Shown here: in pieces, positions 28,645-36,900 of the stretch
Layout: each line of letters begins with the position of its first letter
Numbering within the stretch: the stretch's first letter is position 1
Source of the DNA: Calcarisporiella thermophila CBS 279.70
Taxonomy: Eukaryota; Fungi; Calcarisporiellomycota
Assembly (NCBI RefSeq): GCF_041956535.1
Contig: NW_027192213.1
Coordinates: forward strand, 120,480-184,479
DNA length: 64,000 nucleotides
Reading direction: 5' to 3'
The notes under the pieces: generated by a model
The model's database searches: none
What the model was told of the DNA's origin: nothing
What the model saw: only the letters and a program-made list of their open reading frames with translations
Made by a program: the position numbers and the translations under genes

Positions 28645-30224
28645 TTAGAACTTCTCCAAGTCCTCAACGCGCTCAATCACGGCAGGCGCCACGATGGTCT
28701 TCCCGCGTAGCACATCGAGCCCCTCCCCGGAGTAGGACACCAGCGGCGAGATCTCGAACTCCTCCACCTCTCCAACCACCGTCCCTCCAGCTTGCTCGAC
28801 GAATCGCGTGTGTTGCTGCACCATATCCCGGCGCGACGTCTCAGGACAGTCCACCCCAGTGCCCGGCGCGTTTTTGAGCGGCGAGAATTCGTCCCTCCGC
28901 TCCACCTCGAACACCGCCATCCGCTCGGTGAAGGGAAACACGTCAAACACGAACATCTCCATCTTGAGGCCATTGGGCTTCGCGGGGATGATTTGCTCAC
29001 CCGTGGCCACGTCGATGCACTTGATCTTCTTTTTCGCGATGTGGTACTCGAGGCGAGCCTCAAACCCTTTGACGGCCCTCAAAAAGTCGAGGGTGTAGAA
29101 ATGGTTGGCGATGTTGGCAGCCCTGAAGGCCAGTTGTCCGTTTGGCTCCGTGCGGGAGGCGATTTCCTCGTCAATTTCCGAGTACTCCACCACCCCAAAC
29201 TTGCCATTGCGCAAACAGACAACCCCAACGGGCTCGGTAGGGCATGCCTTCGGCACCGTCTTTGCGCCACAGTCGGCATTCTTCGAGACGCAGTAGCCGA
29301 TGAACACCGGGTCGGCCACACGAACGAGACAGTTATCCACGCAGTATGCGTGAAGATAGGTCACTCCTCGCTCAGCCATGGAGTCAAGGACGTGGTGCTT
29401 GCGCAATGCCTCATAGACTCCACCATTCCCGTCGGGCGCGGAGGTGAGCTGGCTCTTCGACTCTAAGAGGATCTTTCCGTCCATTGAAAAGCACGGGAGC
29501 GTACCTGTGACCATGGAAGCCATGTGAGTATTGGTCATTCTAAAAGATAAAGGATGCATCACGACTCGATGGACAAGTTACCTTGGTCGAAAAATGTAAC
29601 GTTTTTCTCCTCAAGCCCGAAGAAGTTGTGCTCTTTGAAGAACTTTTCGGTTTCTGCGCGGGTAGGACCACTGGTCATGACATACCATGGAATCACAACA
29701 TCGCCATCGCGTTTGCCAGCCCGGCGTGCTGCCAGCTCTTGCAGTTTCCTGATTCTCTCCGCTTGGATCTGGAATAGGGATTTTCTGCTCGGGAGGCTGA
29801 TGTCATAACATCCTTTCGGAGCACTGGAGCCCAAGCGGGTTCCCTGCCCTCCAGCAAGGAGGATGACCCCGACTTTGTTTTGGGCAATCAGATCCATTCC
29901 AATCTTTTCCCAGGTGGCAACCTGCTCCGCATCTGCAGAGAGGCGCGAATCGAAAACATTTTCTGGAAGGGGCGAGACATCGCAGCGAGAGGGTTGCTTA
30001 GCCCCTTCGGTTGCCAGCTTGTAGATGTGGTTGCAGCGCTCTACATCTAGATGCGAGAGTTGCTGGAATAAACTATTCTTTTCCGATATGGACAGCTCGT
30101 CCCAAAATGCAAGGAGATGCTCTTGTCCAGCGGCAGCCAGTTTGCTCCTCAGGGCATCTAGCTGTTCATTAGAAAAGGAATTCGTGTTCTCATTCGCCCG
30201 GTTGGGGTTCGATGTTCCGTTCAT
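28645..30224 (-). CDS. UAP1: UDP-N-acetylglucosamine pyrophosphorylase, 2 exons
   Basis: LLAGGQGTRLGSSAPKG, WYVMTSGPT, APDGNGG, YCVDN, VVEYSE, KMEMFVFDVF, EFSPLKN, EISPLVSYSGEGL. Confidence 0.96.
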
Positions 30225-30871
30225 CTTGATGGAGAGAGTTGGTTGGAATGGAATGCAAAGAATATGCAGGGGAAAAAAAAAAGAAGAAAGGAGAAAAAAG
30301 TGAGAGGGAAGGATGAGCAAAGAGAGCAAATGTGATGAGGTCTTGAATTGGGCCTTCGCTTAAAAGATATATAGCAGGAATAAGGCTTCAACCCAGCCTC
30401 CGAAAAGGGCGCAAATCCATTGGAGGGTGAAGAAAATTCATATATTATGGTTCTATTTATAAATGTCAAAGCCGATGGGATGACAAACAAGAAGTCTGGT
30501 AAACAGTCCTTTCTCGACGCAGCATCGGATCGTTCCAATTTCCCGCCCTCCATAGCGAGCGGGCAAGGGAGAGCCTTACCTGCGAGGGGTTGGAATGTGT
30601 CGAGCCGAATTGGCCTGAACCGTGCGCTCGTTTGCGAAAAATTTCGTCTGCATGCTTCCCAACATTCAATCGTTCCACGCCTGAAAAATGCACTGGAATG
30701 TGAGAATTTATAAAGATACAGTCCCCTTGTTAAAATGTATCCTTTAGCCAAATTTTCCTTCTTTTCCCTTTTCTCTCTCTCCCTTGTACCTCTTCCTCTC
30801 TTTTGCATCCCCTCCTGACTCGCCCCCCCTCTTTTCCATCGACGCTTGTTTTTAATTATATATAGTATAGT

Positions 30872-32948
30872 ATGAGAACCATAACATTAATAGCCCTCGT
30901 GCTGACATTCACCTGCACCGTCAAGAGTGCCGCCGTCTCCAGGCGTGGCCTCCTGGACCAGGTCGCCAATAACGCCCACGTCATCGACCACATCAACCTG
31001 TTCAACTCCATCGTCAACTCCAATCCCCAGACCGCCGAAAACTCAAATGCAAACACGAAGGCCTCCGGCCCCGGCAACAACTCCATTTTCCAGAAGCAGA
31101 AGAAGAAGTCGCACCACCACCGCCACCATAGGAAGAAACATAGGCACAAGCACTGGAGCAGGAGTCTGGAGGAGAAGGAGAAGCGCGGGGTCGTGGACGA
31201 ATCGGCCAACCAGGCCCATATCGTAGACCACGTTAGAATCGCAAATGCCAACGTGGATTCCAACGGGATTGTGGGCGAGAATAGCAACACGAATACCAAG
31301 GCAAGTGGGCCCGGCGACAATGCGGATCTGGGAAGGGCGGTGGGGGAGGGCCTCTACCAGCAAATGCATAACAAGAGAAGACTAGGCGGCCAAGAGAGTG
31401 AGGAGCTGCAGAAGCGTGGGCTCCTGGACAACAGCGTGAACGGGCTCGATCTCATTGACCACCTATCCCTGATCAACTCGATGGTGAACTCGAATCCCCA
31501 GAACAGCGAGAATCGCAACGCAAATACCAAGGCGAACGGGCCCGGGAACAACTCGAATTATGCAAAGCAGGGAGGCGAAGGCATCTACAAGAAGAAGCAC
31601 TGGCGCCGTGGGCTGATCGATAATGCGGTGAACAACGCAAATCTCCTCGGCCACATCTCGATCTTCAACTCCATGGTGAACTCGAACCCGCAGGACAGCG
31701 AGAACCGAAACGTAAACACANNNNNNNNNNNNNNNNNNNNNNNNNNNNNNNNNNNNNNNNNNNNNNNNNNNNNNNNNNNNNNNNNNNNNNNNNNNNNNNN
31801 NNNNNNNNNNNNNNNNNNNNNNNNNNNNNNNNNNNNNNNNNNNNNNNNNNNNNNNNNNNNNNNNNNNNNNNNNNNNNNNNNNNNNNNNNNNNNNNNNNNN
31901 NNNNNNNNNNNNNNNNNNNNNNNNNNNNNNNNNNNNNNNNNNNNNNNNNNNNNNNNNNNNNNNNNNNNNNNNNNNNNNNNNNNNNNNNNNNNNNNNNNNN
32001 NNNNNNNNNNNNNNNNNNNNNNNNNNNNNNNNNNNNNNNNNNNNNNNNNNNNNNNNNNNNNNNNNNNNNNNNNNNNNNNNNNNNCCCCAGAACAGCGAGA
32101 ATCGCAACGCAAACACCAAGGCGAACGGGCCCGGGAACAACTCGAATTATGCAAAGCAGGGAGGCGAAGGCATCTACAAGAAGAAACACTGGCATCGTGG
32201 ACTCGAGAAGCGCGGGCTGCTCGATAACAGCGCCAATGGGCTCGACCTCATCGACCACCTTTCCCTGATCAACTCGATGGTGAACTCAAACCCCCAAAAC
32301 AGCGAGAATCGAAATGCAAACACAAAGGCCAACGGGCCTGGAAACAACTCAAACTTCGCGAAACAGCGGGGAGAAGGTATATACAAGAAGAAGAAGCATT
32401 GGCGACGTGGGCTTCTAGACAACACGCTCAATAACCCCGATATCATCGACCACATTTCAGCCATCGATTCCACCGTAAATTCAAATCCCCAAGATAGCGA
32501 GAATCGCAATGCAAACACCAAGGCTTCTGGCCCAGGAGACAATTCAAACATATCCAAGCAAGGGGGAGAGGGCTTGTACTTCAAACACCACAGCCCCCAC
32601 CATCACTGGCGGAGGAACACGGAGAACCGCAACGCCAACACGGAGACCAATGGGCCCGCCACCACCAACACCCTGGGCTTCCTTGGAAATGGGGGAATTG
32701 CAGGACTTTTCGCCCAACGCCCGCCCGCTCGGGCCACCTCAAGACCCCCTTTGGTACGTCGTGGTCTTCTCGACAACACCCTGAATGGGGCCGACATCCT
32801 GGACCACATCAGCCTTCTTGACTCCATGGTCAACTCTAACCCGCAAGAACAGGAGAACCGCAATGCAAACACGAAGGCATCGGGGCCTGGAAACAACTCC
32901 AACCTGGCAAAACAACGGGGCGAAGGAATATATTATAAGCATTATTGA
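30872..32948 (+). CDS. Secreted Kex2-type repeat polyprotein (Asn-rich ~60-aa units separated by KR/RR); spans an assembly gap
   Basis: Signal peptide MRTITLIALVLTFTCTVKSA. At least 8 units of consensus [KR]R-GLLDN..N..D(L/I)IDH(L/I)S..(N/D)SMVNSNPQ.SENRNANTKA.GPG.NSN..KQ.GEGIY. The frame differs across the N gap (31721-32084), whose length is only an estimate. Confidence 0.85.
30947..32945 (+). repeat. Coding tandem repeat, unit ~190-230 bp
   Basis: Units are visible at DNA level. About 31496-31604 and 32085-32193 differ at only 2 positions by eye. Confidence 0.85.
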
Positions 32949-33929: not shown

Positions 33930-36900
33930 ATGGATCAGGGATTTACCGACAGCGTCTATTACTCCGACCGACTCCAATCGCATCTGGCCCGCAAGCGCAA
34001 GTCCGAACCCTCATGTTTTGCAGACTATTCTTCCGCCCTCAATCTCGACACTTCCAACGTGGAGTTTCCTCCTAGTGGTGGCGTCGCAAAATGGGAAGAG
34101 GCCATGCGCCCGGATGAGGTGGTTTGGCCGGTCACGAGCAACAGTAACAGTAGCTGCGGCGGTGGTAGCACTACCAGCAGCGGGATGGAGGCTTACTCCC
34201 GCGATAGTATCATGGGCGTGGATCCGATTTTCGGCTATGCCAATAACGAGGGCGAGATGGGTTTCCCGAATGGAACCGCCAATTTCGAAATGGATTTCGA
34301 GAACGGCGAGGGCATGATGATGGGTAACGACGGGATGAGGAGCACGGGGCCGAATATCAGTGGAGATTCTGCTGGAAGTTTTGCCGCCATGGATTCTGGG
34401 TTTGGAATGGCAGGGATCGATCGATGGGACGGTGCGCCATTGGATCCTACGGGACGCAACACCATGGAGGAGGCAATGACAAATGTGTCCAACATGACGA
34501 ATACCTCGGCTGGCGCGGGAATCGCGGAGCGGAGGCGTGCCCGCCCGCAGATGCTCCGTCTCAACAACCTCGATATGAACTTCGCCTATGCCGCGGCGGC
34601 GGCAGCCGCCTCCGCACCCAACAACGAAATGTTTCCAGGAGAGTCCCCGCTTACTCCCGCGTTTTTTTCCCCCGCATTTGCTGAGGCGCTTGCGGCGATT
34701 GATGCTGCGGCCCACGCTGGAGCAGGGGAGGCGAGGATCTTTAGCGGCGTTGAGCCCGGTATCAACGAGGTCTTCATGGGGGCTCCGGCCGCCGAATTCC
34801 CAAGGGCAATATTTGGCGGAGCCGTAGGCGGAGAAGAGGGCCGAGAGGCTGAGGGCGGAGGAGTAGTGGACCCTGGTGCTATTCACCCCCGAGTCGAATC
34901 CTCGCTCCCCACCCCCACTACCGCTACGATACCCGCCGCCCTTACCCAGGCCCCCGTTGCAACTCGCCCAGTCTCGACTGGAAGTAATAAGGTACGACGT
35001 CCGACCTCACGGCGAAACTCGCGCTCCTCGGTTAAGAGCCCCGTAAACTCGGTTCCCAACTCTCGAGCAACCACCCCCCCCAGTCCTCCGAAACGGCTCA
35101 CCTCGTACAAAGAGGAAGACGAAGACGAAGAAGAGGCGGGAGGTTTTGAAGGCAGGCATGATAAGGCGATGGGGCGCCCGGACACTAGCAACTCAAATAA
35201 AACTGCCGCTGTCATGCAGGACGTGGAGCGGTATCTCGGCTATCCCCTTGCGGCCGGCGAAAGACGACTCCTCATCTTCACTTCCAAGGTAGCGCAAAAA
35301 TCGTACGGCACTGAAAAGCGCTTCCTCTGCCCACCTCCCATTGCGCTACTCCTCGGTGTAGGGTGGTGGCCTTCAAAGCTTGCGGTGGGTGTCTCTGGTG
35401 AGCCGCAGCTCACCCCGATTGAATGGACCACCAACGAGGGCACTGTGCTGGAGGAGGATAGGGCGCCGCCGGAGGGAGAAGACGTGGTTATGGGGCGGTG
35501 CATTGCGAAGCAGTTGTATATCAATGACGTGGATGAAAAACGAAAGCGCGTGGAGGTTGTGGTGAAGGTTAGTGAGGGCAATGTGCCGGGTGGGACCTAC
35601 TCAAGCCGACCAATTAAGGTGATTTCAAAGCCTAGCAAGAAGAGACAAAGCGCAAAGAACATTGAATGTGAGTTAACTTTCTACCGGGAAATCCTAACTC
35701 TCCGTCGATATTACCCCTGACAGAATTTGCTAACCAACTCCATTTTTTTTCTATTATTTTGTTGGATATGGCACAGTGTGTATCCATCACGGCACCACCA
35801 TTGCGCTCTTTAACCGAATCCGCTCGCAAACGGTCTCCACCAAGTATCTTGGCACTGACACCCACGATCGCTATCACCTTGTCAACCCCAAACAATCCAC
35901 CCCGCCCATGGAGAACGCAGTTTTCGTGGCTCGTACAAGCGGATGGGACCCCTACGTGATTTGGATTGTAGACTTACGGCAACACGAGCCGGCTACCCCA
36001 CCATTCCCCGGATGTCCATCCCCACCCGCAATTGCTCAGGCCGGCCCCCAGGTGCCGGTACACTATAACCAGCCCGTGGTGTTGCAATGCTTGACCACTG
36101 GGCTTGTAAGCCCGGTGATGATCATAAGGCGGGTGGACAAGGGAAGCTGGGTCGTGGGGGGAGGTGCAGCGCCTGGAGTCGTTGGAAGTGGCCTACACGG
36201 AAGAGCGGGTTTATGGGGCGAGGAGGGGATCGGGGACCCAGTATCTCAGCTGCATAAGGTCGCCTTTGAGATTCGAGACGTACACGCGGGCGATTTTGTG
36301 GATCCGTCACGACCAGGAGTGTATCTGGCATGTTTGCCAGAGGGGGTCGGCCAAGGCAGGGCCGTGGAAGGGAGCAGAAAAAGCTTGACCCCGATAGCAG
36401 AGGGCGGCTCCGGAGTGCTGGGGTGGGGCAGTGGGGGATGGGTATCTCCCTCTCAGCAGCATGCACAGAGACATTCCCCCTCCGACCAAGAAGAAGGCCA
36501 GGAGGGAGAAGGAAGCGAGGCTGAAGAGCCGCGCGCCGTAACTGCATGCGTGGAAGAGGGGCGTGCCGTTCGGAAACGTAGAGTATCCCTGAACGGTTCT
36601 GGGTTTGGTGGCACCGGAGGAGGTCGCCGCCGAGTGAATAGCGTTGGGGCAGGGCTGGGAATGGAAACCTCGCGACTGAGCGAGCACCATCAACAGCACA
36701 CGGGCGGAAGAAGGCGCAGGATGAGCGCCAGCGTGTCCGAGAGTAGTAGCCGCGGAGTCGGAACAGGTGGCGGAGGATTTCTTGCTAGTGCATGGACGGA
36801 AGATGTAACGGACTTTGGGGTGTGGACCATTGTTGGGACGGACGTGGCACTGCACTCGTTTCTACCCACGTATAGCACGGGTGAAGAGCAAGAGCTAGAG

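Follow-up and report, generated by a model that had tools for sequence, protein, structure and literature searches.

A gene of Calcarisporiella thermophila that probably encodes a Kex2-processed repeat protein, with peptide units shared with bacteria

We analysed a 64,000-nucleotide stretch of the genome of Calcarisporiella thermophila CBS 279.70 (contig NW_027192213.1, positions 120,480 to 184,479; hereafter the window), the type of an early-diverging fungal phylum, and describe here a gene at window positions 30872-32948 (+) which very probably encodes a Kex2-processed repeat protein (KEP) whose peptides are shared with bacteria, where they occur as single precursors. The architecture of the gene, the placement of its dibasic sites, the homology, the purifying selection and the kexins were computed, and from these the cleavage and the role of the product are predicted. 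KEPs are defined by a signal peptide and at least three tandem repeats, each flanked by KR or RR, which fill most of the protein (Le Marquer et al. 2019, PMC6339444; Umemura 2020, PMC7329392), and peptides of >50 amino acids have been noted as characteristic of KEPs in Mucoromycota and Chytridiomycota; neither of the two surveys refers to Calcarisporiella (PMC6339444, PMC7329392). The window gene has a signal peptide as judged by eye, at least three clustered repeats covering >15% of the protein, dibasic flanks, and an organism that carries kexin. Although KEPs are widespread in fungi, hardly any has a known function. The class is therefore known, but the peptide family found here, its spread across kingdoms and the four routes exposing the same glycine are undescribed, as neither a profile nor a paper was found for them.

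The reading frame of the window gene is intronless and is interrupted by an assembly gap of 364 N. Translation places eight homologous units of 61-78 amino acids and one half-unit behind the signal peptide, which together fill nearly the whole visible open-reading frame. A preliminary description of this stretch had counted six complete units, two cut by the gap and one degenerate copy behind a signal peptide, and this count was reproduced by the translation, by direct DNA repeats (79-180 nt, 69-82% identity) and by a unit profile, which matched each copy with up to 110 bits, far beyond chance; the array was not reported by Tandem Repeats Finder. The same description had noted that units begin GLLD, GLID or GVVD after RR or KR and that they are rich in Asn and free of Cys, which holds for all seven visible unit N-termini and for the composition of the units (no Cys, 13-22% Asn). 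Each unit has an acidic, Asn-rich core of ~48 amino acids with a G-[LIV]-[LIV]-D start, an N-x-N-x-N stretch and then E-N-x-N-A-N-T-[KR]-A-x-G, followed by a lineage-specific tail in which KQGGEGIY is joined by basic or His residues. Between units of the window gene, nonsynonymous divergence (dN) is 0.02-0.5 whilst synonymous sites (dS) are saturated (omega 0.01-0.55), and this combination of saturated dS with low dN argues that each unit is under its own purifying selection. The signal peptide consists of Met-Arg, ~15 hydrophobic residues and a cleavage region of small residues, a layout also seen in eight paralogues.

The closest proteins to the window gene are ‘uncharacterized’ proteins of the same fungus, and the gene is one member of a large family. 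A profile built from 22 units gave 89 matches in the C. thermophila assembly and 93 after all loci had been fetched, that is at least 93 unit matches in ~20 open-reading frames of 1 to 12 units each, including an 11-unit locus on contig 14. N runs also lie inside the unit arrays of two paralogues (L065, G000:C21:71500-75500; L068, G000:C8:964000-968500), and as the assembly breaks repeatedly at such arrays the count of 93 is a lower bound. Genome-wide, [KR]R directly precedes 82 of 87 full unit N-termini, and in these 87 units dibasic pairs occupy 2 of 3821 core positions vs. 128 of 2800 linker positions (Fisher p = 8e-46). Similarly, a dibasic or GR site stands before all 22 unit starts in a set of eight proteins. 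The kexin/furin P-domain (P_proprotein) was found above its curated cut-off at six loci (G000:C5:1110032-1112179, C7:757755-759762, C17:258385, C19:558104). With dibasic sites at the unit boundaries and almost absent from the cores, and with kexin genes in the genome, the earlier designation as a Kex2-type polyprotein is upheld. The P-domain loci include two oppositely oriented neighbouring pairs, a large kexin set for a genome with ~20 polyprotein genes. Four paralogues (P0003, P0005, P0006, P0007) carry a conserved spacer of ~30 amino acids before one unit, predicted to be helix-like (..ARMRMV.EML.QDVE.. ending ATIGKR), which is absent from the visible window gene and may be a pro-region.

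We propose that the signal peptide would be removed, after which kexin in the late secretory pathway would cut behind each KR or RR and a Kex1-type carboxypeptidase would trim the remaining basic residues, so that approximately ten free peptides of 61-78 amino acids would be secreted from each window precursor. The polyprotein would thus act as a dosage device for the free peptide, multiplied further by the size of the family.

Reading the gene from its start, the first segment (30872..30946, +) comprises, in the translation as judged by eye, the start codon, the signal peptide and a short pro-segment ending RR, with SRR directly before unit 1. Unit 1 (30947..31186, +; profile 99.6 bits) has a long Lys/His-rich tail ending KR, and unit 2 (31187..31417, +; 85 bits), the most diverged, contains an internal KRR and then a short acidic spacer ending KR. 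Unit 3 (31418..31609, +; 104.9 bits) has the tail KKKHW followed by RR, and compared with unit 6 it gives dN 0.018 and dS 1.56. Only the first 37 residues of unit 4 (31610..31720, +; profile positions 1-38) are visible, the rest being lost to the gap (31721..32084), whose true length is uncertain. Beyond the gap, unit 5 (32085..32213, +; translation and profile) runs from unit position 27 to its end (HWHRGLEKR) and its DNA is ~98% identical to the tail of unit 3. It is followed by unit 6 (32214..32408, +; 105 bits) and by unit 7 (32409..32615, +; 108.9 bits), which has a His-rich tail ending HHHW and then RR. The degenerate half-unit (32616..32762, +; DNA repeat family D3, profile 11.8 bits) keeps the ENRNANT..NGP core, then passes into a Gly/Pro-rich spacer ending RR, and unit 9, the last (32763..32948, +; 110.2 bits), ends KHY before the stop codon at 32946-32948. 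Half-units with only the second half of the core (ENRNANT onward) after KR or RR occur in two genes, at window positions 32616-32762 and in L067 (G000:C9:838200-841800), and a shorter C-terminal peptide may also be released from them.

The register of the gap flanks makes a single open-reading frame of roughly 690 amino acids and ~10 units likely. On the left the frame stays open to the edge of the gap, where it has reached unit position 37, and on the right it is open already at the first base, which falls at unit position 27. The two flanks overlap in register by 33 nt, and since six of these positions differ they belong to two different unit copies. The frames on either side are offset by +1 at 364 N and would be joined by a true length of 363 or 366. 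At least ~53 codons are missing, and with one extra whole unit ~117-122, which fits the 364-N estimate. The near-identity of the post-gap tail to that of unit 3 suggests that the assembly broke here because of a recent duplication. A word search of the protein collection, sized for proteins of ~250-790 amino acids, returned two gap-abutting partial models and paralogues and no full-length allele.

Beyond the fungus, Pfam, NCBIfam and PDB sequence searches gave no match for the fungal pieces or for their bacterial homologues. An exhaustive profile search of 1.84 billion representative proteins matched 48 proteins, which beyond the paralogues are mostly single-unit proteins of 51-171 amino acids and fall into several precursor types. 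Sec-type precursors have a signal peptide whose last residues (AHA, ARA or ASA) immediately precede G-[ILV]-[ILV]-D-G, for example in Streptomyces sp. NPDC016459 (WP_360791965.1, whose mature peptide would start at Gly27) and in an Actinokineospora metagenome-assembled genome. Searching species-representative genomes with one strict pattern made from ten bacterial cores, we found the unit in nine Streptomyces species and one Phytomonospora, and a profile search found it in 7 of 401 Streptomyces species (1.7%), in a single copy each. Bacterial genes of the family lie on chromosome arms, on a 1.18-Mb plasmid and near insertion sequence (IS) elements, and at ten actinomycete loci no conserved neighbour, be it an immunity, modification or transporter gene, was found within 5 kb. 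Three homologues (P0021, P0022 and P0023) are double-glycine precursors in which the leader GG stands directly before the conserved Gly; the leader model TIGR01847 matches bacterial homologues weakly. P0023 sits between an HlyD_3 gene (30.9 bits) and Peptidase_C39, ABC_membrane and ABC_tran genes, whilst P0021 and P0022 have GG leaders without an adjacent exporter and share a neighbourhood, lying downstream of a gene for the ATP synthase gamma subunit and upstream of one for an ArsA-type ATPase. On one of these two contigs the nearest relatives of the gamma subunit are proteins of cyanobacteria and chloroplasts, and we judge this contig to be cyanobacterial. Other genes are leaderless, starting Met-Gly with in-frame stops just upstream. 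Among fungi, the homologue of Orbilia oligospora (106 amino acids) has its unit behind a signal peptide and KKR, and that of Dactylella cylindrospora (788 amino acids) carries one unit after RR.

Three further matches have contexts of their own. A 97 amino acid protein (P0030) in the assembly of the grass Stipagrostis hirtigluma, on an 8.1-Mb contig, has a signal peptide and one unit after RRFL and could be either a further transfer or a contaminant. On a metagenome contig with bacterial gene content (L045:4320-8155), a 155 amino acid homologue consists of one unit and an unknown C-terminal domain; it lies downstream of PatG-like subtilisin pieces (Peptidase_S8, PatG_D, PatG_C) and 46 nt upstream of a gene with an HsbA (hydrophobic-surface-binding) domain (49 bits). 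HsbA (PF12296) has no match in the C. thermophila genome. On another metagenome contig (L073:5616-6165), a leaderless 54 amino acid homologue starts 5 nt after an ArsR-type helix-turn-helix (HTH) gene and adjoins a divergent FecCD/ABC/periplasmic-binding importer, a context which could reflect metal-linked regulation.

Aligned end to end, fungal units and bacterial mature peptides share 64% identity over 50 amino acids and 71% over 51 amino acids, and a window unit 54% over 46 amino acids. One start is common to all members and one end to many. For example, several fungal paralogues have 51 amino acid units that end ..GQHQ before KR, and in the Streptomyces peptides the stop follows ..GQHT, GQHS or GQHF. 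This same start and often same end in bacteria and fungus suggest that the free peptide is the conserved, functional entity, and the single bacterial precursors of this peptide allow both termini of the released molecule, a defined one of 50-60 amino acids, to be inferred independently. Its N-terminal Gly would be exposed by kexin in the fungus, by signal peptidase in actinomycetes, by the C39 double-glycine peptidase/ABC (ATP-binding cassette) exporter in cyanobacteria and by removal of Met in the leaderless forms: one peptide, four maturation systems and three domain-level groups of organisms. A literature search for a described link between Kex2 and double-glycine processing found nothing relevant.

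The homologies thus point to an undescribed peptide family common to Calcarisporiella, Orbiliaceae, actinomycetes and cyanobacteria, shared across kingdoms and then multimerised. That the unit has actinobacterial relatives and was acquired horizontally had been suggested as an impression; the relatives were found in Streptomyces, Phytomonospora and Actinokineospora and the pattern agrees with sharing between kingdoms followed by multimerisation, but the direction of transfer is not resolved by the tree. That tree of 101 units, which had 47 usable columns, mixes bacterial with fungal rows without support; it shows neither how many transfers took place nor which way they went, and it is compatible with a single origin of the fungal copies. 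The window units fall into a fungus-only group (support 81) whose hallmarks are LDN in place of LDG, GPG and the KQGGEGIY extension. We lean towards transfer from bacteria to fungi, because bacteria have three export modes in two phyla and the fungal finds are confined to Calcarisporiella and Orbiliaceae. The family would clearly exemplify the sharing of a gene across kingdoms with subsequent ~90-fold amplification in a single early-diverging fungus, a thermophile. As Pfam, NCBIfam and PDB have no representative of it, any activity established for one member would give a new family its annotation in Streptomyces, in cyanobacteria and in fungi together.

Structural predictions added little order. 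AlphaFold2 gave confidence values (pLDDT) of 52 from 22 aligned sequences and of 56 from 101, with a helix at residues 3-23, no strands and the rest without order; the ESM Atlas model of the Streptomyces precursor was equally poor. The nearest named clusters in ESM Atlas were rodlin and chaplin, at sub-threshold scores of 0.79-0.81 which by the scale of that tool are a lead only, and a four-copy complex prediction scored 0.02, giving no answer and no evidence either way. The cores are hydrophilic, with a median isoelectric point (pI) of 4.75, a charge of about -4 and 18% Asn, and a beta-type periodicity with a hydrophobic-moment peak appears only around ENRNANTKA. An amphipathic helix as the defining property of the peptide was considered and rejected, as the moment of residues 2-23 is not above that of shuffled sequences (mean z = -0.27).

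Several points weigh against the reading as a processed polyprotein with a defined role. Both the processing and the expression of the window gene are inferred from sequence, its signal peptide was assigned by inspection only, and its open-reading frame is split by an unclosed gap across which the frames are offset at the stated length. Every role proposed below is circumstantial, the low-confidence models tie the peptide to no mechanism, and hydrophilic cores with an ordinary helical moment are a poor fit to a classical surfactant or membrane-lytic peptide. The protein might stay uncut and serve whole as a modular repeat protein in the wall or matrix, its dibasic sites reflecting linker composition; linkers rich in basic residues and His are often seen in repeat proteins, and processing here is a prediction. 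We regard this as highly improbable, since the dibasic pairs stand exactly before the conserved Gly in nearly all units and are nearly excluded from the cores, since the homologues in bacteria are free peptides made singly, whose start and in many cases whose end coincide with those of the unit, and since kexins are present in the genome.

For the free peptide predicted by the KEP reading, the role that we tentatively put forward is that of a bulk, non-catalytic extracellular peptide that would bind the hyphal surface or matrix and, via its His tails, metal ions. Clues to it are the dosage, the HsbA gene adjoining one bacterial homologue, the filamentous hosts, and the ten actinomycete genes having no conserved modification, immunity or transporter genes beside them. 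Next in our ranking, although we think it rather unlikely, is an antagonistic weapon, bacteriocin-like or directed against eukaryotes, which the fungus would have acquired horizontally and amplified. Against it stand the lack of a conserved immunity or transporter gene at the actinomycete loci, peptides that are anionic and not amphipathic, and a core conservation between kingdoms unusually high for a weapon. In its favour, the GG leader with adjacent HlyD and C39-ABC exporter forms a classical bacteriocin export cassette to which the weak TIGR01847 match may be added, leaderless forms are known among bacteriocins too, the bacterial genes are sparse and accessory in their locations, the gene occurs in nematode-trapping fungi, and diversification is seen among the fungal subfamilies. 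The role inferred in the preliminary description, a functional amyloid rich in beta structure or a coat on the surface of hyphae or spores, like the Ustilago repellents or the Streptomyces chaplins, would suit the bulk dosage. The two N-x-N-x-N stretches could stack as Asn ladders, the beta-type moment peaks at ENRNANTKA, all named hosts are filamentous, the HsbA gene lies beside one homologue, the rodlin and chaplin clusters are nearest in ESM Atlas, and the Streptomyces loci are without adjacent immunity or modification genes. However, AlphaFold2 predicted no strands (in low-confidence models, with which amyloid is compatible), the cores are acidic and hydrophilic unlike chaplins, the Pfam chaplin and rodlin models give no match, a coat protein confined to so small a share of Streptomyces species would be odd, some forms are leaderless, and C. 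thermophila already has hydrophobin genes; taken together we hold a coat of this kind to be unlikely.

Metal binding or buffering as the main function, by a secreted metallophore or sequestrant with an Asp/Asn-rich core and His or Cys-His tails, draws on the fungal tails themselves, as 38 of 85 fungal units have at least three His after the core, some with runs of 5-8 His or C-x3-C-HHHH. The leaderless bacterial gene behind the ArsR-type regulator and beside the FecCD-type ABC importer, and the ArsA-type and TerB-like genes that flank the cyanobacterial forms, point the same way, and self-heating coal spoil, the source from which C. thermophila was described, is a habitat rich in metals. Yet these genomic contexts are single anecdotes, the His tails are missing from all 28 homologues outside the species and from about half of the fungal units, which marks them as an add-on and not as the conserved function, and in the window gene only two of six complete units have at least three His after the core, so that we consider it quite improbable. 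A diffusible signal, pheromone-like or of quorum type, is very improbable in our view. Alpha-factor-type pheromones are the best-known KEPs (PMC6339444) and double-glycine peptides include bacterial competence and quorum signals, but ~20 genes and 93 units would be an excessive dosage, near-identical cores in distant phyla contradict the specificity needed, and no receptor or two-component genes lie beside the bacterial genes. Drawing the family together, it is possible, if doubtful, that exported peptides of ~50 amino acids, horizontally shared by actinomycetes, cyanobacteria and at least two fungal lineages and with a Gly exposed by four unrelated routes, serve one conserved new extracellular activity, such as that of a surface peptide which self-assembles through Asn ladders or depends on metal, or that of a new class of anionic antimicrobial, and that Calcarisporiella raised them to >90 copies and fitted them with His tails.

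Each known system with which the window gene can be compared resembles it in part. Rep1 of Ustilago maydis is a Kex2-cut polyprotein that supplies about ten peptides of 34-55 amino acids in bulk for the hyphal surface. The window gene is likewise predicted to be a Kex2-cut precursor of many peptides, but its units are acidic, Asn-rich and not amphipathic, and association with the wall is predicted at most; among the exhaustive-search matches whose source was looked up (Calcarisporiella, Orbiliaceae, grass and bacteria) there was no Ustilago protein. Ece1 of Candida albicans, the candidalysin precursor, shares the Kex2/Kex1-processed polyprotein layout with peptides of defined ends, yet its peptides are unlike each other and the active one is a hydrophobic cationic helix, whereas the window units are copies of one acidic peptide. 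Set against KEPs in general, the window unit differs in having clear bacterial homologues with three other maturation routes and in lacking the STE13 (XA/XP) signature. On the bacterial side, the cyanobacterial homologues share the GG leader, and one the HlyD and C39-ABC genes, with the double-glycine peptides of C39 ABC transporters (class II bacteriocins and cyanobacterial bacteriocin-like peptides), whereas the product of the fungal gene would pass through the eukaryotic secretory pathway and be cut by kexin, and an immunity gene was not found. The chaplins (PF03777) and rodlins (PF25848) of Streptomyces are also small Sec-secreted peptides of filamentous actinomycetes, but chaplins are hydrophobic and found throughout Streptomyces, whilst the family of the window unit is hydrophilic and present in ~2% of species; the chaplin and rodlin profiles gave no match at E = 10 for the fungal pieces or at E = 1 for the bacterial homologues.

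The precursors of ustiloxin and other dikaritins also combine a signal peptide with Kex2-flanked repeats. Their cores, however, are of 4 to ~20 amino acids, carry a Tyr-x-Ile motif and need UstYa/DUF3328, and the window units are longer, without such a motif and without a UstYa match. UstYa/DUF3328 (PF11807) had no match in the whole assembly, nor in the control genomes, so the sensitivity of this search is unproven. With that reservation, the earlier opinion that a cyclic dikaritin-type product (a RiPP, a peptide made by the ribosome and modified after its translation) is unlikely can be retained.

The class I hydrophobin profile PF01185 has three matches in the C. thermophila genome (G000:C25:89122-89352, C18:374809-375051 and C18:373349-373579), the best with 80 bits. 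Hydrophobins are usually described as a family of Dikarya, and matches in an early-diverging fungus were unexpected. The idea that the unit family is a hydrophobin substitute in a fungus without hydrophobins is ruled out by these three matches.

The window gene is flanked by an exon of the UDPGP family (UDP-sugar pyrophosphorylase type) at 29559-30329 (-) and by a gene for a LAG1/CSL-type DNA-binding protein at 33930-35720 (+). As both are ordinary eukaryotic genes, bacterial contamination of the contig is ruled out.

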